64,000 nucleotides of DNA from Ramazzottius varieornatus (taxonomy: Eukaryota > Animalia > Tardigrada), in contig BDGG01000005.1 in NCBI GenBank assembly GCA_001949185.1, positions 496,001 to 560,000 of the forward strand, in the 5' to 3' direction. Shown here one piece after another: positions 39,601 through 62,740 of this stretch; the first letter of the stretch is position 1; each line of letters opens with the position of its first letter. The notes beneath the pieces were generated by a model. That model was not told the DNA's origin. It worked only from the letters and a program-made list of their open reading frames with translations, and searched no databases. Both the position numbers and the translations under genes were made by a program.

Positions 39601-41748
39601 GCTTGTCATACAGTACACGAAACGAATAAGCTTAGAACCTACCAGAAACGGACTGAAGAACGATAGCAAAACGTACACACGTTCAACGGGCGATCGGAAC
39701 TCAGAAAGACACCGCCACTGGTCCGTCAAGACAACTCGACGAGGGAAACATCTCCCACGATATAAGATGCAGATCTGTAAATCAAAGCGTCGACTATTGT
39801 GGCGCAGCAAGCTGGCAAAACGAAGCCGGTGGAATGAGAAATCTTTAGTGCCAATCAAAACTTGTTGCGTGAATATCTGGGAGTCAGCAAGGGCAGGATC
39901 TGCGGAACATAAACATCAATAGAAAAGACCTCAACTCACTCATGCAAAGCATCCAGTCAATAAACAACTGGAAGGAAGTACGCGTACAGGCGTGCGAGCA
40001 GTTTGTTCTGGTTGTGGGTATTTCCGGCGACCTCGGATATCGCAAAGGAGACTTACAACGCAGGCTTCGTTAAGTGCCACCCATAAAAGAAGTTCGCCTG
40101 ACAAGTTCTGTCCTAAAAACCATCGACAAGTACTGTATGTGCTATCGCTGCCATCATGGTACGGAATTTTACTGTGACGAACCTTCCTTGCCGTACTCGA
40201 ACTGCCCGTAGGGTTTTCCGGTACAAAGAGCCTCCTTGTTGATCGACTAATTCTTGCTGTGTTGCTGTTGTACCACAACACTAACTGACTGAGCTGCATT
40301 AGCATAAATAAAAAGCAAAGATTGGTACTGTAATCCGCTCGTATCTCTGTTGTCGAGTACTAGGCAGACAAACAACAGATCTCTGTCGTATGGTGCGATG
40401 CGGACACGAGGAACAAGGGCTGCATTCCACCGCGATGACGTAACCCGTACGTTACGTCAGGCGCCAGTAAATCTGACCAAGGGCTTGTTGTTGTTTTTGC
40501 CTTATGTCGCAGTATCTGGCATACTTTCGCGTACAATGCCCCATCTTACTAAACATTTTCTTACGCTTTTACGTACAGTACCTGGAGGGAGTCATGACTT
40601 TTAGTTCTGCTGTAGGCTGCAAAATGGCTAGCTGTGACGTTATCTTGAGCATCGCGGACCTGCAACAGAAAAGAAGGGACGATATGTCCAGTTCTCTTCT
40701 TTCAAATCTTCTAACATTCATTCATGCAGATAACACTGTGAGGAAGATCTCCGAACAGATGTCGCCGTCACATTCAGTAAGATTCAAGATACCGTAAGCT
40801 GGTGGATGCAGGAGCAAGAAAAGCAGCTCACGTGCGGCGGAGTGTGGCAACTTCCGTTGACGGTTGCTGTGGTCAGAGTGAGCCACATTGGATTGCTTAC
40901 CTGGCTCATAGTACGTGGTCGCAAGCTTGCAGTCCGGCTTTTCCTTGTGAATTCTGGTAGCGCTGCCGAAGTCCACGGGCCTGCAACAGCCGACAGGTAA
41001 AGCTGCGAGTAATGTTAAATTTTCCGGGCGATGCTGGAGTTCCAAACTCCTCATTGTCTAATCTGTACTTACCTCAGTACATGGTTCGATGTGCTTTGCA
41101 ACAGGTGACCCGCTTCCGGCATCAGACCTTTACTGCTCTCGTAGTGTATCGTCCTCCTTATGCAGCTCAGCAAACAATCATGTTTAAGAAGTCCAGGCGA
41201 TCAGAATCTGGCTGGATAAGTTTCAACTTTTCCTTCGCGTTTGCGGTTTGCGTCGTTTGGTGCCTTTGGCGGTGCCTGGTGATGCCTCTGGTGATGCTAT
41301 AAAGCCTGCACCAGGTCGAAGGCGGGAACGGGAGTCGGTCCTGGGTTCGGGGGACTGACCCGAGTTACCCGATTCCCTTAGCCGGGTGAGGCCAGATCGA
41401 TTTGAGTCAGTTTTGCGCAAACTGTGTTGCTTACTTGCTTTCTCACTTTTGTACGATCTTCGAAGCTTTCTCTGGTCGTATACATAAACGACGTCTCCAC
41501 TGTCGGGCACCACCACTTCGCTGGATCGTCAAAGAAGTTGCAAAGCAGGTTGCATGTCCCTTATTCCATCGTGCAACTGCAACCTGTGTACGCGTGTAGT
41601 CCGTGTACCATTCTCTTTCTTCCAGAATCAGCCGAGAAAGGATTGCTGTTCGCTCCGTCTCTACTAGTGGACGATCAAAAAGACTGCTGGATACTGCGGA
41701 ATCGCACCTACGCATCTCCTGCATCGGACGAAAGCTCTTCTGAAAGAA

Positions 41749-44700
41749 ATGGACGACAGGCCTTATTTTCGTGGCTGCAACCCTCATCATTTGGATATCG
41801 GTTTGGACGAAAGTCACGAAACTGACGATGGCAAACCTGTTTCCTTCCGTAAACGGGAATCCAGCCATAGTCCCCATGTCGATGGAATGGGAGATTATCT
41901 GGAGAAATATAAAGAATCAATCGAAAATCCCGAAAAATTCTGGACAGACGTGGCGCGCGACTTCTACTGGCACGATACTACTGAGCGTATGAACAGACAC
42001 CAAAAGCCCATGTTTGAATCTAATCTCGACGTGCGGAAGGGGCCAATCTTCACGCGCTTCATGCCAGGAGGTAAAACAATCGCACTTGAATTCTATATAT
42101 TTTTAATCTGTATGAGCTTATTTTCAGCGAAAACCAACCTCTCCTATAATGCGCTGGACAGGAATATCGAACGAGGACTCGGAAACAAGATTGCGTATTA
42201 CTGGTACGATCGCGGGCACTCTCCATGTAAAAATGGTGCCCGATACTCAATTTCGGGAATTTATCTTCTTGTATAGGGAGGGAAATAATATCGGGGACGA
42301 AGGAAAAGTCACCTACTCGCAGCTTCTTTCGAACGTCTCAAGGTTCGCCAATGCGTTGAAGGAGATGGGACTAAAGAAAGGAGACCGAGTCGCGATCTAT
42401 CTTCCGATGATCTTAGAGCTTCCCATCGCTATGCTCGCTTGCGCCAGAATAGGCGTTATCCACTCCGTGGTCTTCGGAGGGTTCTCGGCAGATTCATTGT
42501 CTGAACGAATGATCGATGGACAGTGCAGCGTTCTCGTGACCGCAGGTTTGATTTTAAAGGAAGAACTACAATCACGTGGATTTTGGTACTGCATTATTAC
42601 TCGAGTTGAAATATTACGGGCGGAATTTTCGCTTCTCTGATCATGGATTAATTATTTTTCAGATGGTGTTTGGCGAGGAAACAAGTTCATTAACTTGAAA
42701 GAGATCGCGGACGAAGCTTGCGCGAGATGCGAAGCTCATGGTCATCCCATTACCCGGAAGTTCGTCGTCCGGCATATGGGACCCGTAAAGGCACGCCCGA
42801 ATGTTTTCAATCTATAACGAACGTAATTAAATCAAAGTCGTATAACGTCATTGACTATCGTGTTTTGCAGAGCGTGAGCAACCAATTAGCTAACAGCTCG
42901 GAAAACGGCCTGACCCATCATCCGAAGGGTCTCGGAGGAGCAGGGGACCAAAGACGAGGCTCGTTATGTACTAAAGTTCGCCAAGACGCGCTTGTCATTG
43001 CTTGGGACGACTCGATAGATCGATGGTGGCATGAGGAACTCCACAGAGCTTCCGATAGCTGTCCTGTCGAATGGATGGACGCCGAAGACCCTCTTTTTAT
43101 TCTGTATACATCCGGAAGTACCGGCAAGGTGATTATCGTTCTGCTGCATCGTGATCTTCTTTAAGTTTGCTGATTGTACGAATTTCGATACATTTTTTTT
43201 GTGGTTTCCAGCCCAAAGGCGTCTTACATACCACCGCGGGCTATATGGTTTACGCTGCCTTCACTTTCAAGTAGGCTGTGACATCTAATTTTTCCATTAA
43301 CTAAGTAGGCCTTGGCAGCCGTATAACTAATCTCGCTGAGGTGTGGGATTAGTTAGTAACATTTCTCATTTTAGATGCGTATTCGATTATCAAGAAGACG
43401 ACGTTTACTGGTGTACTGCTGACGCTGGCTGGATCACCGGGCATTCTTACTTGGTTTACGGACCGCTCATCAACGGCGTTACCGGGATAGTTTTCGAAGG
43501 TACCGCTAAGTCAGTGCCAATATGTCTTCTGGCTACTTGGTCGGAGTAAACTTGTTACCGAGCCTATTGCCGCCGGGAAATGTCTCACTGGTGTCACAAG
43601 GAACTGAGATTTCCTTCCTTATCAGGTATTCCTACCCATCCCGAGCCGGATCGATATTGGAAAGTAATTGAGAAGTACAGAGTAACGAAGTTTTACACTG
43701 CGCCGACGGTCATTCGATCCCTCATGAAGTTTGGAGAGGACCTTGTGCTCAAGTACGAAGGGAAGCGGATGATGTCAAGAATTTGTATCGATTAAACTAA
43801 CGAGTGTCTTGTTTATCTTCCAGTCACGATCGAAGTTCCTTGAAGATCTTGGGCACTGTTGGGGAACCCATCAATCCGGAAGCCTGGCTCTGGTATCACA
43901 AATACGTTGGCAATTCCCAGTGCGCCATCGTCGACACATACTGGCAGTGAGTCTCTCTGCAGTAACGTCAGTGAAAGCCTCGTTTGTCTTATAGATTATT
44001 CTATTGATTTCTTTCGAGTAGATGGGAACCAAATTGAGCGTTATCCTTCTTGTTGCTTTGCAGAACGGAAACTGGCGGCCGTAAGACAACTCGCATATCG
44101 TTTGCTTCATCAGTCACAATCGATCAGATGGGCTGACTGACTAAGTTAACAAGTTGAATGTCTTTAGACGTGATAACGCCGCTTCCCAGTGCGACGCCAC
44201 TCGAGCCCGGCTCGGCGACCCTCCCTTTCTTCGGCGTGATACCCGCAGTACTGGACGAAGACGGCAATGAAATCGACGAACCTGACTGTGAAGGGTACCT
44301 TGTTTTCAAAACAGCCTGGCCTGGTATCATGAGGACAGTTTATGGTAACCATGAACTGTACGAGAAGGTCTACTTCAAAAAGTTTCCCGGATACTATACG
44401 ACAGGAGATGGTACGGGTTGTAGGAACCAAACCGTCTATTGCTGTTTCGCTGTGTTGGTTGTGCAGAAGGTTATACTTACTAATTCCTGTTTGTTTTCAG
44501 GTTGTAAAAGGGATAAGAGAGGGTACTACTGGATAACAGGGAGGATCGACGATATGGTCAACGTTTCCGGTCATCTTTTGAGTACCGCCGAGATCGAGTC
44601 CGCTCTCGTCGAGCACCCCAGCGTTGCGGAAGCCGCAGTGGTATCACATCCCCATACGATTAAGGGAGAGTGTACCTACGGTTTCGTTACGCTCAAAGTA

Positions 44701-45028
44701 GATCATGTATTTGATCAGAAGACGGTTAATGAGCTAAAATTAAAAGGTTTGACGCCTTGACGATTTGGTGCTCTGTTATTGTGCCACGAGCCGAACCGGA
44801 AGTGAGTTAAAGCGTCTGTACTTTGCAGTGCGAGAAAAGATTGGAGCCTTCGCTGTTCCCGACTTTTTACAAGATGCTCCCGGTCTTCCAAAGACGCGAT
44901 CTGGAAAAATCATGCGGAGGGTTCTTAGGAAGATCGCCCGAGGCGACCGGAACTTGGGCGATACGTCGACATTGGCGGACCCTACGGTGATCGACTTACT
45001 ATTCAGTCTTCGCCCGAAGAATGCTTGA
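41749..45028 (+). CDS. ACSS2: Acetyl-CoA synthetase (ACSS2-like), multi-exon
   Basis: [97 protein letters not shown]. Confidence 0.97.
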
Positions 45029-46151: not shown

Positions 46152-47224
46152 ATGAACATGGCTGATGTTCTGGACGGCGGTCAAGCTATCCCAGATGCTG
46201 ATGACTTACGTATCAACGTGATCCCCAACTCCCTATCTGGATCCCCTTCGAAAAAAAACCCTCTTCTGTTGTCAATCCAAATACCGCAGAACCACATCGA
46301 ATCAACGGGACGCCAAAATATCCCGCGGTCCGCTGCAGCTGGCAGTAAGCCTCAAGCATCGCCAAAGCCAAAAGCGTCACCATCGAGAGCATCTCCCAAA
46401 AGAAAAGTCGATGAATTCGAACAGTCCACCACATTTCTCGTTACTTCGTTCGTTAACTATCGTCTGAGAAGGCTGAAAGCAGAAACCAAGGCAGAACTTT
46501 TCGCGAACCCTAAACTTCGACGACGCACATATCCATGGACTTCAAACACCAACCGCGCCCTAGAAGGTGGGCAAGCTCTCAGTGTTCTCTTCCTCTGTCA
46601 CGATCTAATGCTGTGTTTTAAATTCAGATGGACCAAGAATCGCACCTCGCTTGGGCCAAGTGGATAAAGTAGCGGAAGCCCTTCAAGCTCTAGGTGACCA
46701 TCTGGACTCGCGCTACTGGCAGTCCTTCGAAGAGGCATTTCCGGCGGACTGGTTCGACTCTAACACCACCGAAGAACTTCGAAACAGGTTCCTGGACATG
46801 TCTCAAGATCTCTACTCTAATGTGCAAGATGTAGAAGACGAAGCCCTGTACGAGGAAAAGATTAACTGGGGACGAATCATCACTCATTTCTGCTTCACAT
46901 CTCAGCTAGCTACAGTTGCTGTCCTGTCCAAACAGTACGAGCTGGTTAATCAGTTAACAGGCTGGTTGACGCAGTTCATCACTCTCCATCTTCGAACGTG
47001 GATCGAGCATCATGGAGGATGGGTAAGCTATCTTTTCCAAATTATTTTAAGGTGTTAAATGGATTTCTGTTTTGCAGGAGGGACTGGTAGATTACCGCAG
47101 AGTACTGTTAGGCAAGTCGAAGCAGGAGGACTCCGCTGTCGACCTGGCGTCCAGCGTGATCGCGGGAGCTGTGCTGGGTGTCTTCAGCTTCTTAGCGTTT
47201 AGAAACTACTCCAACTCGAACTGA
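46152..47224 (+). CDS. Multidomain Bcl-2 family protein (BH4-BH3-BH1-BH2-TM); exons 46152-46566, 46628-47022, 47078-47224
   Basis: BH4-like TTFLVTSFVNYRL, BH3 VAEALQALGDHLD, BH1 INWGRIITHF, BH2 WIEHHGGW|EG (intron after GGW), C-terminal TM VIAGAVLGVFSFLAF. Splice phases are consistent. Confidence 0.93.
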
Positions 47225-48859
47225 GCTGTTACGCTCGAAGATGAAAAGGTGACTTCGGATTTGGCGTTCCCGACGAGACGTTACACGGTGCAACTTCGAC
47301 ATCGGCAGCTGGGCTTTTGGGGCCTCGCCGACTTCTTCGAGCAAGTTCTTCTGACTCAAGTTCTCAGGATCCATTCTGTACGATCTATTTCTTGAACAGC
47401 AAGCTTACTTTTTAACAAAGGCAACGTACGTACGTGATCATTTTTAAATCTTTTTTGGTGACTTTTGTCAAGATGTGCGCTACACGTACGATACGCAACG
47501 ACCACTCCTCCTTTTCTCATTGACGCAAGTACGTTCTTTTGTCCAGGTTTCTTGTCTGCGTTACAGGGTTTTGGCAATGTCTTACCGTGTATTTTGCCTA
47601 TTTACCATGGGTATCGTCTATGTATTCTGTGCATTTTTTCTGAACCCGTCACTAATGTTGTAAAACAAGGCGGTATAAAGTATAAACTCGACTGTGAGCA
47701 TGTCGTTGTTGTTTTCGGGTTCTTTATGTTGAAGGAAGTGGACTTCCTAAAAGGCATACAAAGTGATATCGAAAACGACGAGGGAAGGCCATGCAAGAAG
47801 GAACCGCGAGCTGGTTGGACAGGACATATGGACTCTCTGAAGGATCATCAATCTTTATCGTAGTCGTAACTGTCCATCGAATGCATTACTAGCCACTGTT
47901 TTAGGTCCCTCGTATGGCCAGAATATCATTGTAAATCTAGCCATTCCGAACTTCCATCCTATCAAACAAGGAGCTGGGGCAGTGGCTTGCGGACATTTGG
48001 TGTGTAAAGACGGTGGCGTTCAGCTAGCTATTTTTAGTTCGGAATTCATCAGATTGCTCATCTCCACGAGCCTCATCTCCCAATAGGCTCGTAGATGGCG
48101 CTGTTTGCCGAATCTTGTGGGCAAATAACTCAAGCAAAGCGGTAGCACAGGCGTCGTTCTCGTTCTCGCCCCTGCTGTCCAACCCGTCGACGAACAACGC
48201 TACAGAGGTGGTTTGGAAACAAGGAAAGTTTGAGCATCATCAGCCCGTTATGGTGTTTAGATGCCAAGGAGCAGTGAACTTCCTAGTGTCAGGTCCCAGC
48301 TAACCACGCCCATATCGCCTGCCCGTAGAACCCATCATGGACAGCTGGAGCGAGCTCCCGAATCTACGGGACAGTAGCCTGGTACAACATCAATGTAAAC
48401 GTATCTTCGAAACCTGGTTTCTTCCGTAGTCCCCATGTGCTCGCCACAGTGAAATCCCGGCAGTCTGGAAAGCTTGCTAAAGCGAGAGCACGACGAGCTT
48501 TCACAAGACCGGGGCGTCGTGGACCTGCTGTAAGATATCCTGTAAGCTTTCTCACTTCACCTTACTGGCTACGGCGAGAGTAGAGCAATAATCCAAGATT
48601 CAACCGGTCACCAAGCGTCTCATTCTAGGGAACGGACCTTGCAGTTTTGCCGGTGCAGTGGGGCGAAGATGGCGCACATTGCGCGTCGTCTTTTCACTCT
48701 ACCAACACCTTCGCTTGCGCTTTTGCAGACAATATGGCGTCGCACTATTGTCCCGCGCCGACCAGAGTGGACACGGAAATGTGCTGAAAAGAAAATTATG
48801 ATGGTGAAGCAGTTTGGACAAGGTCAGCAGTAAGGTCAGAAGGATTAAGCGATTGCTCG

Positions 48860-49790
48860 AGGGGAGACACCTGTGTTTATCCTCTTTGTTTTCATCCCCG
48901 CTCATTATCTCTTTATTCACGCGTCGCATTATAGCTGCTTTCAAACCACAGGACTCCTGCGGTGACTCCACTGATCGTTCCAAAATGAACCTAAGTTCGG
49001 ACGTACCTGTCGCCACGTCCGATCCCCGAACTGACTTCGTGCTTCCTGGTCCAACTTGGACTTTAGGCAGAACGACCAACCGTCAAGACCGCTACTTGGT
49101 CAAGACTATCGACGTCACTGACCTCCGGTCGACAAAAGAGAAGCAAATATGGCTACTTCGAGCAAGCTTATGAATGTTGTAAAGACGTGTCCGTTATTGA
49201 CCACACGTCTTCCACACGACAAACACGCGACACAAACCGGTTATCCGATGAACGTCCAATTGACTTTGAATTGCATCCGTATACAGACGCGTTCAAAGTG
49301 ACGGACCAGCAGACCATCGTAGATATTTCTCGTTAGAATGTTCATATTTTCCTCTGTTGAATACCTTATGGCTGCTCCTCGCTTACAGTGTCCATGTGGC
49401 AAACCAAGGTTGTTGGTCTGTGCAAACTCGAAATAAAGTTTGATTCATCACGTTCGAGGTGTGAAAGGATGAATATTAGCTTCCTTTAGGAATACTTCGG
49501 TTATCGCTTAGGGTGGCCACGATCGTTCGTCAGTAGATATCACTCCGACCAATTTTTTGGGGAACTTCGTTACAAGGCACACTGTCGTGCATTATGACGC
49601 CGACAAGTGCAAGTTAGCAAGTTGTCTGCATAATGTTGGATATTCCCTCGAGATACATTGGTATTGAGGATAGCAGAGTGTTAATTTGATCAACAGTTGT
49701 TTGAGGCTTCTTGTTGACGGGCACTACAAGCGTAATCGTTAGACGGATATGCCAACTGAATAATTAACAGCCCATCCCAGATGTCAAGTG
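48860..49790. repeat. Local direct repeat copy 1 (block A ~48860-49310, block B ~49640-49790)
   Basis: Shares a near-identical stretch tgtaaagacgtgtccgttattgaccacacgtcttccacacgacaaacacgcgacacaaaccggtt, and agtgttaatttgatcaacag...gggcactacaag, with 51655-52470. Confidence 0.9.
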
Positions 49791-50769
49791 TTTATGTTTC
49801 AAGTGCACTCAGATTCGCCGTGGATGTCAATAGATTTTCTGTATCATTGCTGGTGTCACTACCTGTGGGCTTGCCATAAGGCAAGATGTTCTCCCCTCGA
49901 AGTTTTAGAGATGTAAAGGTACTCATCCGAAGAAACATACCTACATACCAGGTTTGGGAATTTGTCGTCGTGAAGGTAATCATCCTTGTTTGGATCCGTG
50001 ACATTCGAGCTCGTCGATGATCAACTACGGTCTCATCATACTCGGACGAAGAGTATCCATAATATGATTCCATATGCATCTGTTAAGTGACCTTTAGACA
50101 AGGAGTGATGTAACAAACTTCGTAAGCCGATACACTTGTTGTTCATTTTGGCGGTACCAGTGTCTCTAAATGTTCCGAACTCTCATCCGTGGGTTCTCGC
50201 CAGCTTTTAGACCTAACCCAGCTATCTTCCGACAAAACTGAAGATCGAGGTCAGGTTTCACGTCGAGATAAATCAAAATGCCTCGATGGATAGTTTGATA
50301 CGGATATCGATACGATTGAACGCTTTGAAATACCACCTGTATGAAATCCGCTTTTGCTGTTTGGCTGGTAGTCGATTACCAGCTTTTATGCATGGATTAT
50401 AAACTCCGTATGCATTATGCATTTATGCATGAATATCAAGGACGAGACAGAGTCTGTTTTGCACCTGTGAACTGGTAGCTGATCGCTTGGACTTGACCTT
50501 TCAAACTGGAAAGTCCAAATCTGCAATCCGAAACTTCAAATGGCGGCCGTGAGATGGAACCTCCGTGTGAAAATATTCGCGCAACCTGCGGGTCTTACGT
50601 TCTCTCTTCCTACCACTGTAATTATCCTTTCAAGTAGCAAAAAATTTGATCCATTCAGTATTTCCGACGTACGCTGACTAAGGTGACGGTCGCATTTTTG
50701 CAGTTCATGGACCGAGCTTGATGAATTGGCTCGCTGATATTACCGTGCATCAAATTGTCTCATTTACGA

Positions 50770-51270
50770 TTTCGATGCGTGCAATGAGGGACTTGTTATC
50801 GTCATGATTAATAGTCGAAATGTTCAGCAGCCATGTCAAAGGATGGCTCCCACCGTTCGCCCATAAAGATTGACGATACACTTCATAACTTGTAATGGTT
50901 GCGACGGCGTCCATGCAAACCGCCGATCAATTCACTTTCCTTCCTGTAGTAACCACTCAATCGCTTTGTCAGGTTTGGCTTGATCAAAAGATGCTTTGAA
51001 TGCGCATTCTATCATATCGCTAACCAGGCAGGAAATCTCCCCTCGTCAAACTAACGGAACGCCGCTCTGCGTGGCTAATTGCGACTTCCGGTAAGATGAT
51101 GGATCATGTATACACCGTTGTCCGTAAACGAATTCTTCTTCACCAAACACCGTTCTCATCTTTCAGTCGGCTAATCTCGTAATCCGCTGCTCACACGATT
51201 CGTCAAGTGATGCTGATCCATACGGGCGATTCTGCGGTTGGTCTCACGACTGTCCTACACGTGCACGTGT
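50770..51270. repeat. Dispersed direct repeat, block C copy 1
   Basis: cttgttatcgtcatgattaatagtc, cgtccatgcaaaccgccgatcaattca and cattctatcatatcgcta(a)ccaggcaggaaatctcc are shared with 58645-59150. Confidence 0.9.
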
Positions 51271-51654
51271 CCTCGAGGTTAATTATTATACCAATAATAT
51301 TTTTGAGTCACGCTGTGGGCAGCGCGATTCCGATGCGCACCGGTTCCCGGAAATACTAAATACTGCCAAAAAAGATGGTGTGGCTTCTAGGATAAAACCA
51401 AGGGTTATGCGGCTGCGAAGACCCATATCGCCTGGCCAGGACCTCAGTTACAAGATCGAGCCGCGACAGAAGGCCTTTGTGTTGGTAGCTCCCAACTGAA
51501 CTGCCTAATGTGACGAACTTCGCAGACTTTTGGGCGCCACTCGATATGGTCATTCGTGCCAAAGCAGAGTGAGCAGGCCTTTTGTTTTCTCACTGGGAAG
51601 CGCAGTTTAGAGCGAGGTGAGTAGTGAGGTCAGAAAGATTAAGCAGTTGCCCGA

Positions 51655-52470
51655 GGGGAGACACCTGCATGTGTTTCTCTCTTAATATTCAGAGATATCG
51701 TCCTTCTCTCTGTGTGCGTTATGATCAGAACGATTCCCAAAAATAGCATAATTTTCAACTCATCAATCGATGACGGATGGAACCACCGTCGGAGAGGCTG
51801 GCACTTGTCTTGCTTCCTTATACGGTTTACTCTGGGAACAAAAGAGGCAAAGGATAACCGATCAAGAAACAATTCAACGTCACTGACCTCCGCCCGACAA
51901 AACATGGGCAAATATGGCTACCTTGGGCAAGCATATGAATATTGTAAAGACGTGTCCGTTATTGACCACACGTCTTCCACACGACAAACACGCGACACAA
52001 ACCGGTTGTTCGAAGAAGGTCCGCTTGGCTTTGAATTGCACCTGTATACAGACACCGTTACCGTGATGGACGAGCAGACGACAGTATGCGTTCGAGACGT
52101 GGTAGGATAAAACTAATATCAGATTTTACATAGAGTAAATACAAATGTCAGTCGAAGAGCCTATTACCATTCTGTGCAAAGGTTATTTTGAGCGCTCTGT
52201 AAAGAGCTCGAGGGCAGCAGCAGTAGTGATGATATTGATGAGTGACGGACATTTTGCAAAAGAGACCAAATGTGTATCATGGAGTGTCCCGTGAACTGAT
52301 GAAGAGCATGTCCATCTATTGAAATATTCCCCGGAGATACATTAATGAAGAGGACAAAGTGTTAATTTGATCAACAGACTGTTGGGCTTTTTGTTAATGG
52401 GCACTACAAGTGTAATCATTAGACAGATATGCTCATTGAATAATTAACAACCCGGACCAAATGTCAATAT
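51655..52470. repeat. Local direct repeat copy 2 (blocks A' and B')
   Basis: Same orientation as copy 1, offset by about 2.7-2.8 kb. Confidence 0.9.
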
Positions 52471-53704
52471 TTCACCCTGAAACAGATCACCATTTTGCCT
52501 TGAATATTAAGTTAGCAAATTCGTGCTGTTACTGTTATGATTACCGCACCGGTGGATATCCATCACTGTTCGCCGCTGTGCGGTTAACTTATTGAGAGCG
52601 GTTGTGGGTAAATTTTGGTTGTACGGTTGTGACGATGATACTGCCGGCTTAATTTACAGTCATTCTGCGGAAGAACCCGGAAGTTAGAATATCATTGATG
52701 CTATAAAGTTTTCGAATTTTACTTCATGAAGCCATAAGTCGGAGGGTCATTATGTGCTACTTAACGCGTGATATTTGAGCCTGTTTACGATCAGCCATCA
52801 TCATTATTCGGTAGAAAGTTTCCATCTGTTGGCCGACCTTCGAGTTGACATACGGACGATAAATTTACATTTGCTATTGGATCGAGATGCCGTAACACGC
52901 ATGGACCGCAAACCGACATCGCATTGCTTACTTCCAGTGGTCATCTCTGCTTTGACTCCACTGGATGATCATTTCAACGAATGCGGCTTCCTAGATACAG
53001 CCGTCGAAAACTACTCTTTAGCGAGCTTTCCCTCTAGCGATTTTTTGTCTGGGGCGAAGTACTGGTCGCCTAGTCTAGTTGTCGCCGGTCAGGCGTGACA
53101 AAGCGCCAGTTCATAAATCATCGCTAATTAATTCTCAAAATGAATTACTGCTATCTCCGGACAGACACGCGCCAGATCAAGAAGATTATTTACAGTACCA
53201 AAAGCCTTCATGACGAATGTACAAACGGAGAATGGAGTGCAAAACAATTCCAACCGGTTTCAAGATTCGGTAGATGCTAGACAGAGCAGTGCACCATTAG
53301 TAGAAAAGTTGATTTCGATTCTAGAGGAACCAACGTTGAAAAACCAAGGTCCAGTAAAATCGATCCGAGAGATCCGACATCAGCCAGAAAATAAAAACAA
53401 TATGAAGTGGAATTTCAGACTTAACCTCGACCACGCCCAACGCTGCAAAGGCTTCCAGGCCCACCATGCTTTGGAAGGGATTGAAGAGATATAAACATAA
53501 ACAGAACAGTCGAAAGGACGGAAACAACGAAGAGGACTGTGCAGTAACTGAACACAAATGACGATAAAAGCCGTATAATAATTACAGATGACGGCCGGAA
53601 GGAGAGAAGAGAGGAGGGAGGAAGGAGATCACTCGGTCATGTTCGTGTTATTGCAAGTGGCTGTTATCACCCAACACTTTCCACCATCAAAGTTCCCTTC
53701 GTGG

Positions 53705-56700
53705 TCAGTCAGCCGTTGAGTGTGATCTGTGTCGAGACGATTCGACAGGTGGCGCCCCTCCTTGACGTGTGATGTAATGCCAGAATCGAGTCACCACAGC
53801 CGAGGAGCTGGACCCAATCCGCCCCAGCACGTTTCTTCCTTGTCCATCAACGGCGTCCTGAAAAGAAAGGAACATATATTAACTCTCAGCCGTTTGAAGT
53901 TTCGCAAAGCTGGACAAGAAAGAAAAGGCACGTTGTTGGCCGTTGGTCTGGCCGAAAGTTCCCAGACGCTTCAAGCGTTCGGTTTTCAAAGACAACGTTC
54001 AAAAGCTTGAAATTGTTATCCACACAGCGTCTCAATGGTGGTCTAACAAGTTTAAAAGGATTCTGTAACGACTGCGATAATTTTCTCACGTTTAACCCGA
54101 GTCAAGATACCTTGCTTGAGTCGTACTGTATTGCGAGGCGCTTTGAATATTCATTAAATCGACGAAACGCACTGGGGTATTTTTGAATTGGCCAACGCCC
54201 AATACTAACGTCCCAGCAAAGCCTTTCTTCGAGAGCATAAGGTTTCGCTCCAAAGCGATAGTTTTCGAATTTGAGTGTTTGATCAAAACGGCGAACAGCA
54301 GTTTGGCGACACGTGTGTCAGTGTGTGTGTGGGACGACTTGTGATAACATGTTTGAAGTTGATTTTAAATCCGTCATTAGAGGACTTCAGCACGCGTCAA
54401 GCCCACGACTTTGAACATCTTCACTCTGTTTATTCGACTGGGTAAATTTGCACTTGAAAGGTATAATCAGAGATGGAATCAGCCACTTGATAATCATAAG
54501 TCAACGCAGGTGCGGACATACGACCGATCGCGAGGGACCTTTTAAGGGCATCAATCTCATATCTGCCTTGACTCTTCATATTTGACATCTCTTCTTTCCC
54601 TTAGTCAAACATTTTCCACCGTAATCACATTATGTCTCCAAACAAAAGAACAAGTTTTGATAGGCCCCATCTTTCGCCCAAAATATCCAGTCTTCCCTCA
54701 CACTGTTCATGTCCTGTTTTGCCATCCCGCACTAATTTATATCCGTTCACTTAACCCAAACTGCCTCCTAATAAACCTTCACGACCAGAAGGCGCTCTTC
54801 CGGAAATCCTTCATCATTTAATTAGCCAATTATTGTGTGCGCTATTATACGCTGTTAGAAGACCATCCTAGTTATCACTTCCGTGTTGACATAATGTGAT
54901 TGAAAAGGGAACCGAAACAATCGATTGTTATTCTAATGCCCAACATAGCGAATTGTATCATCGTGTCTTTCTTTTCAGTGACTGTGCCACCGTCCAGTAT
55001 GGTTTTTCCCATGAAACACCCACCCGAATCACAAAATGGGTAGTCAATCAAATATCCCGCTTATCAAAGCACATCGAAGCGCATCAAAGCGGGATACTGC
55101 TTCGAAGCGGGGTGAAGCGGAGTAAATAAATTAAATTGTGACATTTCCGATGTGCTTGACTTGCTCCTGATTACCATCGACGATGGGCAACTCCCTCTTT
55201 TGACTAAGCGTTAACAGCCCTTCGAACGCCGTTCAAATTCAGTTTAAAGACTTCGCAACACATGTTGCAAATGTGTAACTGCTAAGCAAACATTTCACTC
55301 TTGACAGACGAAGCGAGACGACGTTTCAACTTTCAAGTCGTAAAAGCGCGGCTTCTCAAACGTCATATCTATATTGAAGAGCTGGTCAGCGGCAGTCAAT
55401 ACGGAAGGTGGTTCTATGTTTGTGATGTCAAGCGAGGGATATGACTTTTGTAACGACAGCGGCATTTTGTTGTCATCCTAAGAACGGTTTGGGGATAAAC
55501 AAACAGCTTCCGCCCACCAACTGATGACCGAAGAGAAGATATTTGCGCATCGAAAAATAGTTGCAGTGCTTACCGTAGTCTGGAACATTTGCAGGTCAAA
55601 TTCGTCGCCAATCTGGGCCAGTCGACAGGCGATGCGGTACTCGAGCTTCTTCATCCGCGTCGCGTCGGCCTCCGACAGGGTTCGCTTTCTTCGTGGGCGC
55701 AGACCGGAAGTGACGATGTCGGGCAGGTCCCAGCTGGCTTCTTCGTCTCGAAACATGTCGGGCGAGTGAGACGCGGTCGAGGAAGCTCCGTCATCGCTGA
55801 ATGGCTCATCTTCGTGTGCGCGATTTAAGTGAACGGCTTTATGCGGAGAAGGACCCATGTCGGGAGCCTCACCGTCGATCGCGTCACCTGCCACCAGAAA
55901 AACTGTTAAAACAATAATGAAAATCAAGTCGTAACTTTTAGAAAAATACATTGCCAGGTGGATCAATTTGAAAGGGGTTCGAGGAGGGACGACAAGTGGA
56001 CAAGTGAGTGGACATTGGGGCGAGCAATTATGACGGCCGCACGTGCATTTCGACCGGCGATTGACAGCTGGCGCCTACTGCATCTCAATTGGAATTGGTC
56101 AACATTATCATTTATCGTCAAAATCCTCTTTATATGTTTTATGGCGGAGTGAGGATCTCTTCGCATTGTCTGCTGATACTGTGGATTGCTCGGCGGTTAC
56201 GAAACTTGTTGTTGCTCATCTTACGGCATCGAAGTGCGCCACTATACTAACAGTTGATATCTTCTGTCAAAGAGGTGAAATTTGAGCAGCTGCTTTTCAG
56301 ATGCCTTATGCAAGATTAGACCGACTCGCATGTCCATCACGAAAACTTCATCGATGCCCTTTTCTGTCGTCTGTCCATCGAACAAAGGAGAAAAACAACC
56401 TGTTTGCGCAAAGTACGAATCAGAGCGGTTGCCGTACTTAATTATCCTAGCACAGCCGAACTTCCGTGGCTAAAGCTGCCTTAACCGCGGCGAAAAGGAA
56501 GAAAACTACACCGCTGACAAAGTGCCGCTAATTAGCGTGTTTACTTCCGACTGCTGGTGCTACCTTTCCCGTTTGAGTCATCGCAGAGTGATTATATCTG
56601 CTCGGATGAACCTCTTCAACAGACGGAGAGAAGCAGCTAATCGCCAATGCACTTGTTGTTTTCTTGTCCTACTAATCCCGTCTTCTGGGTTCTGGGTTCT

Positions 56701-57420
56701 GGCGCCTTTCAACCTTGCACCTGTCGATCGATGAAACATAAGAGCAGCACGGACAATCACAGAGTGACACTGAAATGAGCAGACTCTGATCTCATTGCAC
56801 TATGTAAATAAACCTACAGGTTGTCCTTGTTACCATTATCCCTTGGCCGTCATATCATGCGGATTAGTCATGCAAAATTACAGTAGAAAAGAGAACTTCC
56901 ATCACTATGTAAATAGAATGGAGGCTCGGTACTTACTGTGGAAGGAATTTTCCCGTTGCGCATCGAGCTCTTCCAAAGAGTGGTCCGCCGCTTGTGTTCG
57001 AAAGTTCTCCCAGAAGAGACTCAGTGAGGGACGACTTAATAGATGACGGCGCATCGTCAGCGAAGATCCAGCCCAGATGCAGGCATCAAACGGGAAGTTA
57101 GAAGCTCGGGAAGGACCGAATAACAGTGGTGATTTGGAGCGGACTGTGACGCTCAACTGAAGGTCCAGCTTGACTTCCGGTTGGAGACGACTACGGTCTT
57201 CGTCGGCCAGCATCATGATGTGACTGAAGTCCGGGTCAACGGAAAGATTGTCCTGTTCTTCATCCGAGGTAGTTAACCAAAAGTCAGCGTCACCTGTGGA
57301 CGGGAAGAAGCGAGTGTTGGGAGGGCAGAAGAATCCACGAGGAGAACCATAGCCACTTTCGTCAGTGTGAGCAGGAGAAACAGGAACGGCGTCGAAGGAC
57401 TTGTTGGGCAGATCAGACAT
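53705..57420 (-). CDS. Candidate BH3-only protein (BIM/BAD-like); exons 57420-56937, 55887-55574, 53857-53705; ~316 aa
   Basis: BH3 motif LEYRIACRLAQIGDEFDLQM in a low-complexity S/P/D-rich protein with no BH1/BH2. Donors are GTAAGT (56936) and GTAAGC (55573), acceptors are pyrimidine-rich CAG, and phases match (1 and 0). A 5'-UTR acceptor lies 12 nt before the ATG. Confidence 0.78.
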
Positions 57421-58644
57421 AGTTGATGCTAGCTGCAACTAGTATAGAAGAGGAGGGGTCAACAGTGCTCATCATATTGCACGTAATGAATTGGTTTCAC
57501 TGAATCCACTCACAGTTGGCTCACTTGGGAAACTGGTACATGAAGTTCAGTGGCAGAAATCGGGAACGCGATCAGGGTTGGAGGATCCGGGAATGAACTG
57601 CATCCATCCACCTATTTCAAACACAGATATAATCGGTTTTGAACTGCAAAGTTTGCAACCCGACCGAGGAAGGAGAATGCACTGTTTATGAACTGGGGAA
57701 GTGAGAATACTCGTTCGGGTACTCGTATTCGAAGTGGAAAATGACCAGCTGACCAGGCAGACCAGACTCATATGTGCTACGACCGCCCTTCCAGCTCGTG
57801 TCAGCGAATCACCGCGAGAGATATGGAGATACAGTTTGTTACACGGTGGCAGGCGATGAGGGCATATCTCTGTGACGCAAGCAGTCGCAGGTCTTCCGTA
57901 GTTCTTCGGTGTTCTTCAACTTCTTTGCGGAGGGCTTTCTGCAGTCTTTCCCGCCGTTGTCAAATAAACTTTTGGAAGTCCGGTTTTTGAGGTCCTGAAA
58001 TATTTTCTGCGGCTGAATTACTTGAAGGTGCACACAAAAGATTTATTTACGGCAGTTTTACGCTGTGCTGAATCCCAGTTCAGGAGGTTTTGACGAACTA
58101 CGTACTTCTCGTCGGCTATCAGGGCAGACATATCCGGGATGACAAGGGTAGAGATTTCGATTCGGATATCCATAGAATTAAGCCCTTCATGACACAATTC
58201 AGATCACTAAGAGGTCTCAGATATTCATCTTCCCCAAGGTTGTGTTTAGGCGGGATTTGGCGCAGCATTGCGCTCATCTAGCTGGGCCTTTAACTACGTA
58301 ATCGATCCCCCAGTTAAGCATACTACAGTTTCAGGTTGGTTTCGGAGGACCTTGACGTCTGAATGCCGGCACCTCTGCTTCCCAGCTCGTTTCAACCTCG
58401 ACAAAGTCCACTGTCCCTGCAGAGAAAGTGAACTTTAACCTCGGCTAACTTAACTTCCGAACAAATACAAAAATCCAACCGTCGACTGAGCAAAGCGTCC
58501 ATACATTCACAGAACTGACTTCTCGTGGGTGAGTGGACAAAACCTATGTTGACACGGAATTTGTGTAATTTTCCAATTTGACGGATATGGTTGATTAGTT
58601 TGCCCACTGGTATAACCGCGCTTTAAACTGTCCCTTTTGACGCG

Positions 58645-59150
58645 TGCAATTCGATGCTTGTTATCGTCATGATTAATAGTCAAAATGTTCGGAAGACCGT
58701 ACCAAATGGTGGCACCCGTCGCCCGGTCGTAAAACCCTCTTTCGAAAGATGGACGATCGATGGGCAACTCACAGCTTGTAGTGAGAGCGACGACGTCCAT
58801 GCAAACCGCCGATCAATTCATTTTCCGTCCTGTAATGACCACTCCATCGCTTTGCCAAAAGATCTTTCGACTGCACATTCTATCATATCGCTACCAGGCA
58901 GGAAATCTCCTATCATCAAACTAAGGGAATGGTCCGAGCGCCGCTGTGCGTGGCTAGTGCCAGCTTCCGCTTGGATGATGGATAGGTCATGTACCTTTGC
59001 ATCCAACAAATTTCTGTACCACCATCGGTAGATATTGGTCTGCTAATCCGCTGTTCACCCTGTCACACGATCTGTGTCAAACGACACAACTTTTCATACA
59101 GGCTATTTCTGCGGTTGGTCCCACGCCTGTCCGACACGTGTGCTTCGGCT
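58645..59150. repeat. Dispersed direct repeat, block C copy 2, upstream of the BH3-only gene
   Basis: Collinear ~500 bp similarity to 50770-51270, with indels. Confidence 0.9.
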
Positions 59151-59730
59151 CACGGAAACCTGTTATGTCTGTCGCTGGTTTGTGTGCAGATTTTCTGCAC
59201 ACAAATGACAAATTTAAAGAGACGCGCCAAGGAACCCATATGTTATTTTGGTAAACTTCCCTTTCCGGGTACCAGACTAGAGTCACTGGACTACCAGTTG
59301 GAAGCCAAGTGGCACCACCTCTGATTACCCTCGGGGTAACTACCCCAGCAGCCCAGCGACTGGGTAATTTACAGCGTGCGAAAATTCAATCAACCGCTCA
59401 TATTTGCACTCTCACATTTCAATGCTCACATTACACATGTGCACTGGTTTGATTGATCTGAAAGTCACATAAGACTTTTGATTTGCTTCTTAACCGGAAA
59501 TTCATCCCCAGTCTACTTAGCAAAGCTGCATGACCAATATTAATAAGCTCGATCTAGCTGCAGGATTCTTCAGTTCTCCTGCATCTGTGCGAGCATAGAG
59601 CGGACGTCTTCCGGAGAATTTATCTTATCGGTATACCGCACTTCGGTTTCGTCGATAACGTCAGTTTACTGCAACTACAGAGAGACCGACAGTACGTACC
59701 TGGCAGGCTGGCGACGCGTTCAAGGTGTGT

Positions 59731-59864
59731 AGTGTACTGTAATTGCTTCATGAACTTGGCGAACTGACGTCAGAGTAAGCGTACAGTTTACGGGTACGAT
59801 GACGCATACAGCATGCGTTTACAATGACGCCATTCGCCAAGTTCATGAAGCATTACAGTATACT
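59731..59864. mobile_element. MITE-like element with ~41 bp inverted repeats, core flanked by TA, just upstream of the rhodanese ATG
   Basis: Left agtgtactgtaattgcttcatgaacttggcgaactgacgtca versus reverse complement of right agtatactgtaatgcttcatgaacttggcgaatggcgtca; termini TA|CTGTAA...TTACAG|TA. Confidence 0.72.
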
Positions 59865-59957
59865 GTAAATGTATACTGCCCTAACGGGCTTAATGATCCT
59901 TGCAGTCACCTCGAGTACATCGTCGGAAGTGTCATTTTTACAGCGTGAGGACTCAAG

Positions 59958-60835
59958 ATGTCATGGACTGTTAGTAGGTGCTTACAAGGATATCTGAGAA
60001 GCGCTTCTTTCTCTCCTCGGTGGGTGCGACCATGCTCCAAAGAGTTTCATGCGGATGCGAAGCTCAGCAGGAAAAGGAACGCGCATAGTCCACTTCTGTT
60101 CAGACGTGCTGGCGTCATTCCCTATTCCGTTTGTAGCCCGTATTTGCCCAAACTGACTCCTACCCTCGGTTATCGACTCGCTGGGACTGCACCAGGTATG
60201 CTAATGTTGGTCTAACGTCTTTCTTTCTATTTGGCGCGATATTGCGAGAGACTCAAGTCGTATTGCCCACTTGACTTCGCGCAGCGGTAATGGCATTCTC
60301 CTTTCAGTGAGCCACAGCTCGACAGAAATGGTAAATCCGGATGATATCGTTTCCTACGAGTATGTGAAGGAACTCGCAGAAAGTGGTAAAGGAATTATTA
60401 TTGACGTGCGTCGGCCGGAAGAAAGGGACACTGATGGTTCCATACCCTCAACCGTCAATATCCCTTGTACGAAAAGTTGGTACGAAAATTTAGACTGGTG
60501 GTCCTGACTGTTGTTTTTTTGCAGTGAACGATATTGCGGAAGCCTTCGCGATGTCTCCCGAAGAACTTTCATCGAAATACGGCCTCAACATCCATGATGT
60601 TAACGACGAAATTATCTTCCACTGTCGATCAGGAGCACGAAGTCAGCAAGCCATGGAGATCGCAAGGAATAATGGCTACCGAAGGTGAGTACTGCTTCCT
60701 GTTTTTCACGGTTACGTTTACCACATGCTGCTGTATGGAGCACAGGCCAATGAGAAGTGAAGATTATGGCCGTCTTTCAGTGCAAAGAACTACAAAGGAA
60801 GCATCACAGAATGGAACGCCAAGACAAAACGGTAG
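59958..60835 (+). CDS. Single-domain rhodanese/sulfurtransferase (TSTD-like) with putative mitochondrial presequence, 4 exons
   Basis: IIDVRRPEE..GSIPSTVNIPL, active-site IFHCRSGARS, NYKGSITEW. N-terminus is Arg/Ser-rich and poor in acidic residues. Confidence 0.88.
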
Positions 60836-61542
60836 ATGTCGTAAAGTAACTTCTTGTGATGTGACTTCCGAACCTGCATAGCTATCTCGTGACGGAGACA
60901 CACACACACACACCATACTATACGGGACGCTCTCCAAATTTCGCACGGCGAACATCATACATTTGCGTCTGTTTACGGGTAGCAGATCGAGAAACCTGTT
61001 GGTCAAAATTTCTTTCTCCGACGAGCTCGTATGCTAAACCTGGTGTCTCGAAGTTTTACCTTTCAATCCTTGTGACCAAAAACTTTATCAGTGCAAAGGT
61101 CTATTCCTAATAACCTTACAGTCCACACTCCACAGTATCCGTATAGGTGCGGAGGCAATCCGAGTAACAGATGTTCAAACATAAATATCTACCTCACAAT
61201 AAGCTCACATAATTGTGTAGACTCTACAATGGCACAACACTGTTTCACACATAGACGGAACAATTTGCAGTTGAAAGATCTGACAAACGGTTGAGATGTG
61301 CTTAAATCATTCAGAAAGTAAAATAAAATTTGTCGGTGGATATGAGAAAGTGGACAAGACAGCAGCTAGTCAAGCACAGACACAATGAGATATTACACGG
61401 ATGAGCTATACAATCAGTTCTCCGGCGACAAGAGTATGGGGGACTATAAAGTTCATGTACAGGAGCCGCAAGCAGCAACCCGCAGGGTCTTCAAGCTGAA
61501 TTGTTCTGGTGTGTGGTGTGAAGTGGAGGCGGATCGACGAGA

Positions 61543-62740
61543 TCAGTTGAATCGGAAGGATGGTTCCATAGATGACAAAATATCCCATTCGTTGTCCTCC
61601 ATGATCTGGGCGCTTGAAATTCTGGAGCTCAGAAAATATCTAGAAATGAAACTGGTTATCGGGACCTGACTGGAAAATCCCCTTCATCCGAAGTGATCAG
61701 TCTTACCCCAAGCCAGCTCCAATAACCAAGGCAAGTACGTTCGTTAGAATAAGCACCTTCCAGAAATGGGTCTTCAAGCTGGATGGCTTTTTGATGACTC
61801 GTCGTACACGATGCAATCTAACGGACAAAGAGAACGGCGATTTAGTGTTACCGCGCAGGACTTATGTAAGGTACTCTGCAAACCCTTCATAGGTGTACGC
61901 TAAAAGGTTTTCAGGCTTCACGTTACTCCGTGAACGGAAAAATGGTACGTTCAGAACGAACGTACACTTTTGCCCCGTTTTCTGTGTTATGCCATTCCCA
62001 AATCCAGTCAGTAGATCCGTCGGCGTTCACGGGATCCAGCATCTGCCGTTCAAATTCTTCGTTGCAGTCCCCACTTTCCGTAGGCGAATCCGGAGACATG
62101 GGGCTAAAAACAATAAGGAAAAAGATGTCTGGCATCGAAATTGAACTCGAAATACTTTTTGGCGAAGCGTTACAGGACGACTACCTGCTACGCTTGCTTT
62201 GGTAGAGGCTCTGTCGAGCAGAGTTTTGCAGCGACTCCTTCTGGGCATCGAACAGCAAACGTTCCATGCTCGCGGATTTCTTGGCCTGTGTGGAGTTGTA
62301 CTGAGCAGTGGACACCAGCATGGTCTCTTCCGTTTCACGTCCAGATGCCGAGGGGACAGAAAGGACTTCCCATGATTCAGTGGATTCTGCAGAATGGTAA
62401 AGGTCCTTTTAAAGTTTGTAAACAGTGAGTTCAAAGAGTGAGCATAACAATAATTCATTCATTCTGCTCGTCTGGATCACGACCAGAAGGTTCATCGCTT
62501 CTTTCCAGGATTCCGAGCTTATCATCTCTCCACTTATGCTGTGCGGAAGTTTAATTACAGGCACTAGTTTCTAAACCTTCGGATTCCACCTTCGTTTTCA
62601 GATCAACGAGCAACTCTCGCACGAAAAAACAGACGCTATAATAATCATTGCTGTGCTAATAATATCTCGATGGGTTTCTTCGAGTCCCGCTTACCTCTCA
62701 TTCGATCCATTTCTGGAGAGGTAGGATGAGATTTCTCCAT
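61543..62740 (-). CDS. BNIP3: BNIP3/NIX-like mitophagy receptor; exons 62740-62695, 62386-62185, 62103-61966, 61817-61707, 61639-61543; 197 aa
   Basis: N-terminal LIR ESWEVL, MERLLFDAQKES (cf. BNIP3 MEKILLDAQHES), DWIWEW (cf. DWIWDW), TM KVLILTNVLALVIGAGLGYFL with GxxxG. All four introns are GT-AG and in phase; total 594 nt. The first exon is the least certain. Confidence 0.88.

Follow-up and report, generated by a model that had tools for sequence, protein, structure and literature searches.

Introduction

Does the tight grouping of three genes from one pathway reflect a function served by the grouping itself, or is it neutral? The question is raised by a locus of the tardigrade Ramazzottius varieornatus, where a Bcl-2/Bcl-xL-like gene (RvY_10015), a BH3-only gene (RvY_10019) and a BNIP3/NIX gene all lie inside 16.6 kb, at positions 46152-62740 of the 64,000-nucleotide stretch of DNA analysed here (hereafter the window), which corresponds to scaffold C5:496001-560000 of an assembly of 55.84 Mb in 200 contigs. 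In other animals, the products of such genes are direct partners; the genes of the vertebrate Bcl-2 system are not known to be neighbours. The tardigrade trio brings together the sole Bcl-2/Bcl-xL-like gene, one of the two BH3-only genes and the sole BNIP3 gene of this species, and its 16.6-kb proximity is a real linkage of real, intact and independent genes from one pathway. As for its meaning, the leading reading, to which we give about even weight, is that the proximity is neutral, i.e., the outcome of chance or of leftover linkage in a compact and locally duplicating region.

An earlier note on the window had placed the three genes at the positions listed in Table 1 and had suggested that they form a functional cluster. 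Gene models are found at these very positions, those of the Bcl-2 and BH3-only genes being the same as public proteins, and the kinds of proteins named in the note are also recovered, namely with matches to PF00452 and PF06553 above cut-off and with a canonical BH3 in RvY_10019. The genes are taken in turn below, followed by their setting and by the explanations that can be offered for their proximity.

The Bcl-2/Bcl-xL-like Gene

The three exons of RvY_10015 (46152-46566, 46628-47022 and 47078-47224 on the plus strand) are separated by GT-AG introns of fitting phases, and the exon model is identical to the public protein P0002 (318 aa). Exon 2 matches PF00452 with 66.9 bits against a cut-off of 31.4, the whole protein scoring 63.7 bits, and the protein carries the motifs expected of a multi-motif member, i.e., LxxxGD in BH3, NWGR in BH1 and GGW in BH2, together with a C-terminal hydrophobic tail; the last intron cuts BH2 directly after GGW. 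Towards the N-terminus, a BH4-like helix (residues 82-106) is predicted confidently by AF2 and its F-x-x-Y-R-L pattern is kept in the orthologue from Hypsibius exemplaris, with no Pfam BH4 match at E<=1. The AF2 model as a whole (predicted template modelling score, pTM, of 0.56; predicted local distance difference test score, pLDDT, of 80-93 in the core) comprises a disordered loop (residues 121-147), a helical core and a C-terminal helix, and its top Foldseek matches are Bcl-xL/Bcl-2 (TMt 0.79-0.86). By sequence, the closest solved relatives are likewise Bcl-2/Bcl-xL (E ~2e-15; 59.8-55 bits), then BAX (52 bits). Orthologues were found in H. exemplaris (P0004, corresponding to BV898_17035, OWA52584.1, on a scaffold of 99 kb; 56% identity over exon 2) as well as in ENA and Logan contigs. 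RvY_10015 thereby resembles the pro-survival members of the family, and an anti-apoptotic role is presumed from the ranking of its relatives. Across the whole genome, the sole other match to PF00452 is at C15:767163-767483 on the minus strand, unlinked to the trio; the closest solved relatives of this second Bcl-2-fold gene are BAK proteins.

The BH3-Only Gene and Its Paralogue

RvY_10019 is encoded on the minus strand by three exons, i.e., 57420-56937 (ending in phase 1), 55887-55574 (needing one base for its frame) and 53857-53705 (starting in phase 0), a structure identical to that of the public model P0162 (316 aa), labelled “hypothetical protein.” No Pfam family, including BIM, BAD, BMF, PUMA and BID, is matched by the full protein at E<=1; exon 2 alone aligns to BID with 13.1 bits (E 0.072), under the cut-off of 25, and sequence comparison with solved structures returned chance matches only. 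The protein is modelled as disordered save for two helices, at residues 234-261, which hold the BH3, and 284-298. Considering the motif reading, Pfam and the model together, RvY_10019 qualifies as a BH3-only protein, exhibiting a canonical BH3 with four hydrophobic positions and a small residue plus Asp, no other BH domain and no Bcl-2 fold.

The BH3 is also the most conserved part of RvY_10019, whether compared with its paralogue (see below) or with P0001, which was predicted on a short ENA contig of a different organism and is orthologous to exon 2. With the latter, overall identity is 52-54% and the BH3 is identical over 22 consecutive residues. A basic R-x-R-x-x-S site (RRKRTLS, residues ~226-233, window 55680-55700) precedes the BH3 by ~12 residues and is kept in P0001 as RTRTMS; we take it to resemble an Akt/PKA-type site, recalling the phospho-regulation of BAD type. 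In the ESM Atlas, the closest cluster (0.90) comprises 119 arthropod members, hypothetical proteins of ~247 aa, which may constitute an unrecognised panarthropod BH3-only family; the next clusters are BMF, PUMA, BIM and BIK at 0.77-0.87, with the first three at 0.82-0.87, a similarity to be taken as a lead only. Word-index protein searches returned no BH3-only protein from H. exemplaris, a weak result given the length filter applied, and scans of JGI metagenomes with the BH3 exon and with the Bcl-2 alignment returned no match.

A genome search with the exon-2 alignment revealed a second BH3-only copy at C5:604781-605143 on the plus strand (204 bits). It belongs to RvY_10031 (public model P0161, 311 aa, 71% identity to RvY_10019), located at C5:603,365-607,000, i.e., ~43-47 kb past the end of the window. 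The whole BH3-only gene was duplicated with its flanking repeats, the two copies being inverted and ~50 kb apart, and the duplication left out both the Bcl-2 and the BNIP3 genes. Identity between the paralogues is a mosaic, with tracts of 99-100% amid stretches of 40-80%; one tract of 100% takes in the BH3 and runs 95 nt into the following intron. Such a mosaic is consistent with old paralogues that undergo gene conversion rather than with an assembly artefact. The possibility that RvY_10031 is an uncollapsed haplotype was discarded, large parts of the two copies being only 60-80% identical. Between RvY_10019 and RvY_10031, the ratio of non-synonymous to synonymous substitution rates (dN/dS) is 0.35, 0.33 and 0.27 in exons 1, 2 and 3, respectively, and the frame and stop codon of exon 3 are preserved, so that all three exons are coding. 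Judging from this comparison of paralogues, the BH3-only gene is under selection.

Modelling of the BH3 in the Bcl-2 Groove

The earlier note had suggested modelling the neighbouring products as pairs. Residues 84-289 of RvY_10015 were folded together with the last 39 residues of RvY_10019 exon 2, and the BH3 peptide was placed in the canonical groove of RvY_10015, its neighbour, with an interface score (ipSAE) of 0.78, versus 0.02 for the best of three controls; of the solved complexes, 51 of 78 reach the mark used for this score, as do 2 of 108 mismatched pairs. Contact agreement among runs is at least 85% and the pLDDT of the partner at least 71. In the model, the Leu, Ile, Gly-Asp and Phe of the BH3 face residues 164-175, 192-202 and 216-228 of the Bcl-2 protein, with the Asp in contact with Arg221 of the NWGR motif. 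As a point against taking this result at face value, the pass may reflect memory of solved Bcl-2/BH3 complexes, and such a model does not tell apart which family member is bound. All in all, as far as the predicted complex can tell, the BH1-BH3 groove of RvY_10015 is most likely the docking site for the BH3 of RvY_10019.

The BNIP3/NIX Gene

The BNIP3/NIX gene consists of five exons on the minus strand (62740-62695, 62386-62185, 62103-61966, 61817-61707 and 61639-61543) with GT-AG introns, totalling 594 nt and encoding 197 aa. Its identity is based on per-exon scores and on one Pfam search reading through an intron: the latter, across an in-frame intron of 81 nt, gives PF06553 at 28.5 bits against a cut-off of 26, the sole match in the genome, and the exons taken separately score 19.3, 13.0 and 13.3 bits on profile positions 7-62, 71-113 and 137-169, in that order. 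A W-x-x-L motif, SWEVL, is present in exon 2, in the position occupied by the LC3-interacting motif (LIR) in human BNIP3. Two blocks, MERLLFDAQKES and DWIWEW, are also present, as is a transmembrane helix whose AxxxGxxxG pattern spans exons 4 and 5. Past this helix, the last exon (61543-61639) bears a second W-x-x-L-like motif, NEWDIL.

From what is known of these families, we infer roles in death and mitophagy for the products, whose genes and modelled groove fit come from the analysis itself. RvY_10015, as the sole Bcl-2/Bcl-xL-like protein, would be the guardian; the BH3 helix of RvY_10019 would dock in its groove, the Asp of the helix facing the Arg of NWGR, and would thereby release or activate the Bak-like effector whose gene lies on C15. 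The BNIP3/NIX homologue would be a tail-anchored protein of the outer membrane, and its tail anchor together with an N-terminal Atg8-binding motif suggests that it is presumably a mitophagy receptor.

Layout and Setting of the Locus

The three genes are separate transcription units in the orientation +, -, - (Table 1). In addition to them, the earlier note had recognised a single further gene, a rhodanese, and the Pfam searches bear this out: PF00581 is matched over two exons (21.8 and 20.4 bits) with the active-site loop H-C-R-S-G-A-R-S, and none of the 20 other open reading frames (ORFs) of at least 70 aa between the three genes has a Pfam match. A phase-compatible upstream exon of the rhodanese gene (ORF 59949-60212) opens with an Arg/Ser-rich, acid-free stretch; no test performed here tied the rhodanese to the death machinery. 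From the numbering of the tags RvY_10015 and RvY_10019, there are probably three annotated models in the 6.5 kb between the Bcl-2 and BH3-only genes. Immediately upstream of the Bcl-2 gene lies an acetyl-CoA-synthetase-like gene (~41700-45000, plus strand; AMP-binding 83.7 bits, AMP-binding_C 46.6 bits).

Table 1. Features of the locus. Positions are those of the window unless given on scaffold C5; a dot marks features without a strand.
Feature	Position	Strand	Description
Bcl-2/Bcl-xL-like gene RvY_10015	46152-47224	+	3 exons, 318 aa
Local repeats X and Y, between Bcl-2 and BH3-only genes	48800-52500	.	Y at 48.8-49.8 and 51.6-52.5 kb, X at 50.7-51.3 kb
BH3-only gene RvY_10019	53705-57420	-	3 exons, 316 aa, modelled as disordered with a BH3 helix
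BH3 motif, end of exon 2 of RvY_10019	55574-55660	-	protein residues ~239-266
Diverged copy of repeat X, upstream of BH3-only gene	58635-59140	.	70-80% identity
Single-domain rhodanese gene, between BH3-only and BNIP3 genes	~59958-60835	+	PF00581
BNIP3/NIX gene	61543-62740	-	5 exons, 197 aa
Further copies of repeats X/Y	C5:601.5-602.1, 608.4-609.2, 611.5-611.7 kb		

Two local repeats, X and Y, neither of which has a Pfam match, accompany the BH3-only genes. Every copy is confined to C5:544-555 kb and 601-612 kb, and their being dispersed transposons was ruled out since all copies lie in this neighbourhood. Of the X copies, the one at 50.7-51.3 kb shares 95.7% identity with that next to the paralogue RvY_10031, but only 70-80% with that next to RvY_10019.

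Is the Linkage More Than Chance?

A common origin of the three genes was considered and rejected: in agreement with the earlier note, which saw no similarity past the BH3 motif, profile-profile comparison (hhalign) aligns only 19 BH3 columns with a probability of 1.7%, so that the trio is not accounted for by tandem duplication of a single gene. Two sets of results weigh against the proximity being neutral. On the one hand, under uniform placement and with a gene set defined after the locus was seen, which makes all these values nominal, finding a Bcl-2-fold, a BH3-only and a BNIP3 gene within 16.6 kb has p ~5e-7 to 1e-6, finding any 3 of 29 apoptosis/mitophagy loci within 16.6 kb has p ~9e-4, and finding any 4 of the 29, as independent loci, within 121 kb, the caspase pair being counted, has p ~1e-3. 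The comparison with chance given gene counts that the earlier note had called for thus makes the grouping nominally unlikely, from 5e-7 to 1e-3 depending on the gene set and post hoc in each case. On the other hand, tardigrade genomes are rearranged rapidly: R. varieornatus and H. exemplaris share little of their gene order, and even the HOX genes are spread over 2.7 Mb (PMC5531438); with local synteny this rare (PMC5531438), a tight trio is not the default. Gene order being generally unconserved between tardigrades, a trio conserved in relatives would be informative.

Caspases are found at seven loci, including a tandem pair (C5:660,971-661,654 and 662,608-663,264) and one at C5:1.284 Mb; the pair is ~100 kb from BNIP3, which brings six death-related genes into ~121 kb. 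The BIR genes, at ~14 loci, are all outside C5, and FUN14 (C1), Apaf-1 (C2) and Beclin (C1) are unlinked to the trio. By our own estimate, ~0.1 to 1 coherent trio would be expected genome-wide among hundreds of possible pathways, so that one such trio is no rarity; the test set was moreover chosen post hoc.

Considering these results together, the neutral reading is favoured on account of the mixed orientation, the intervening rhodanese and repeats, upstream regions sharing no k-mers, and a duplication that took the BH3-only gene along without Bcl-2 or BNIP3. Nothing in the locus points to a shared promoter, operon or cis-element: in addition to the orientation and the genes in between, no 8- to 10-mer is common to the three upstream regions of 700 nt, a weak test, and simple patterns for FOXO, p53 and hypoxia-response (HRE), antioxidant-response (ARE) and heat-shock (HSE) elements gave nothing informative in these regions.

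Alternative Explanations

A rather unlikely alternative is linkage by descent, where a lineage-specific BH3-only gene was born at this place and has not yet moved, or where C5:540-665 kb is the remnant of an older linkage group, in a region prone to local duplication and gene conversion. In line with it, the BH3-only gene and the repeats X and Y were duplicated only within C5:544-612 kb, the identity of the paralogues is a mosaic (60-100%), and BH3-only genes are regarded as recent and lineage-specific (PMC10107002; PMC8998228). A local origin, however, cannot be shown for a protein with no detectable homology to Bcl-2 or BNIP3 past the motif, and BNIP3 is an old gene, the presence of which at this locus would be left unexplained.

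That the trio is a selected functional cluster, as proposed in the earlier note, is unlikely, at best to the same degree. A sensor, a guardian and a mitophagy receptor would be held together by a shared chromatin or regulatory domain or by co-adapted alleles, and would set apoptosis versus mitophagy under stress. The kinds of proteins were confirmed, the docking of the BH3 on the neighbouring Bcl-2 protein has the support of a model, the products are direct partners in other animals, the grouping is nominally significant under uniform placement in a genome where gene order is as a rule poorly conserved, and C5 carries more death genes, namely the second BH3-only gene (603-607 kb) and two caspases (661-663 kb). 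The part of the proposal that gained no support is the functional unit itself: the genes are oriented +, -, - with unrelated genes and repeats interposed, their upstream regions have no 8- to 10-mers in common, and the Bak-like effector, Apaf-1, Beclin and FUN14 are all unlinked, to which is added a test set picked after the locus was seen, among hundreds of possible pathways that make an occasional trio no surprise. In its fullest form, i.e., a life-or-death module in which the sole Bcl-2 gene, a BH3-only sensor and the sole BNIP3 gene are selected and co-regulated, with a spare BH3-only gene and two caspases within ~120 kb, the proposal is improbable. If true, such a module would persist in a genome that scrambles gene order and might tie to the survival of desiccation and irradiation.

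Finally, it is highly improbable that RvY_10019 is an unrelated disordered protein in which a short linear motif resembles a BH3 by chance, a reading under which the trio would shrink to Bcl-2 and BNIP3. In its favour, the full protein matches no Pfam family, and motifs as short as the BH3 can appear by chance (PMC10107002). Against it, an orthologue with 52% identity is unchanged over 22 residues at the BH3, no other part of the protein is as well conserved, BMF, PUMA, BIM and BIK are near among the Atlas clusters, and the complex model passes with canonical contacts.

Comparison with Known Systems

Reviews of Bcl-2 evolution describe the machinery as reduced or lost in Ecdysozoa, with BH3-only proteins known only from C. 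elegans and, later, the dipteran-specific Synr, and treat BH3 motifs as short motifs that evolve easily (PMC8998228; PMC10107002). No paper was found on tardigrade BH3-only or BNIP3 genes, nor on the locus tags of this study. Like the tripartite Bcl-2 system of vertebrates, the tardigrade set includes one Bcl-xL-like and one Bak-like multi-motif protein as well as a disordered protein with a canonical BH3, modelled in the groove. It differs in being minimal, with one plus one multi-motif genes and two BH3-only paralogues, and RvY_10019 matches none of the vertebrate BIM, BAD, BMF, PUMA and BID families in Pfam.

Within Ecdysozoa, EGL-1/CED-9 of C. elegans and Sayonara with Buffy/Debcl of Drosophila similarly associate a BH3-only protein with a small Bcl-2 set (PMC10107002; PMC8998228), and no genomic linkage is described for either system in these two papers. 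The BH3 of Drosophila Synr is weak, dipteran-specific and in a coiled-coil protein, whereas that of the tardigrade is strong, BIM/BID/BIK-like and in a disordered protein; the tardigrade has moreover kept a Bak-like gene, in contrast to C. elegans.

With the BNIP3/NIX/DCT-1 receptors, the tardigrade BNIP3 shares the Pfam BNIP3 match, an N-terminal W-x-x-L, the DWIW(D/E)W block and AxxxGxxxG in a C-terminal transmembrane helix, where the Ser-His pair of the human BNIP3 transmembrane dimer is replaced by Thr-Asn. It differs from them by having no recognisable BH3-like motif and by the NEWDIL that follows the transmembrane helix. Taken as a whole, the tardigrade retains a minimal but complete set, with a single Bcl-xL-like gene, a single Bak-like gene, BNIP3 and a pair of BH3-only genes whose BH3 is of textbook form, small enough for testing how apoptosis is restrained during anhydrobiosis.

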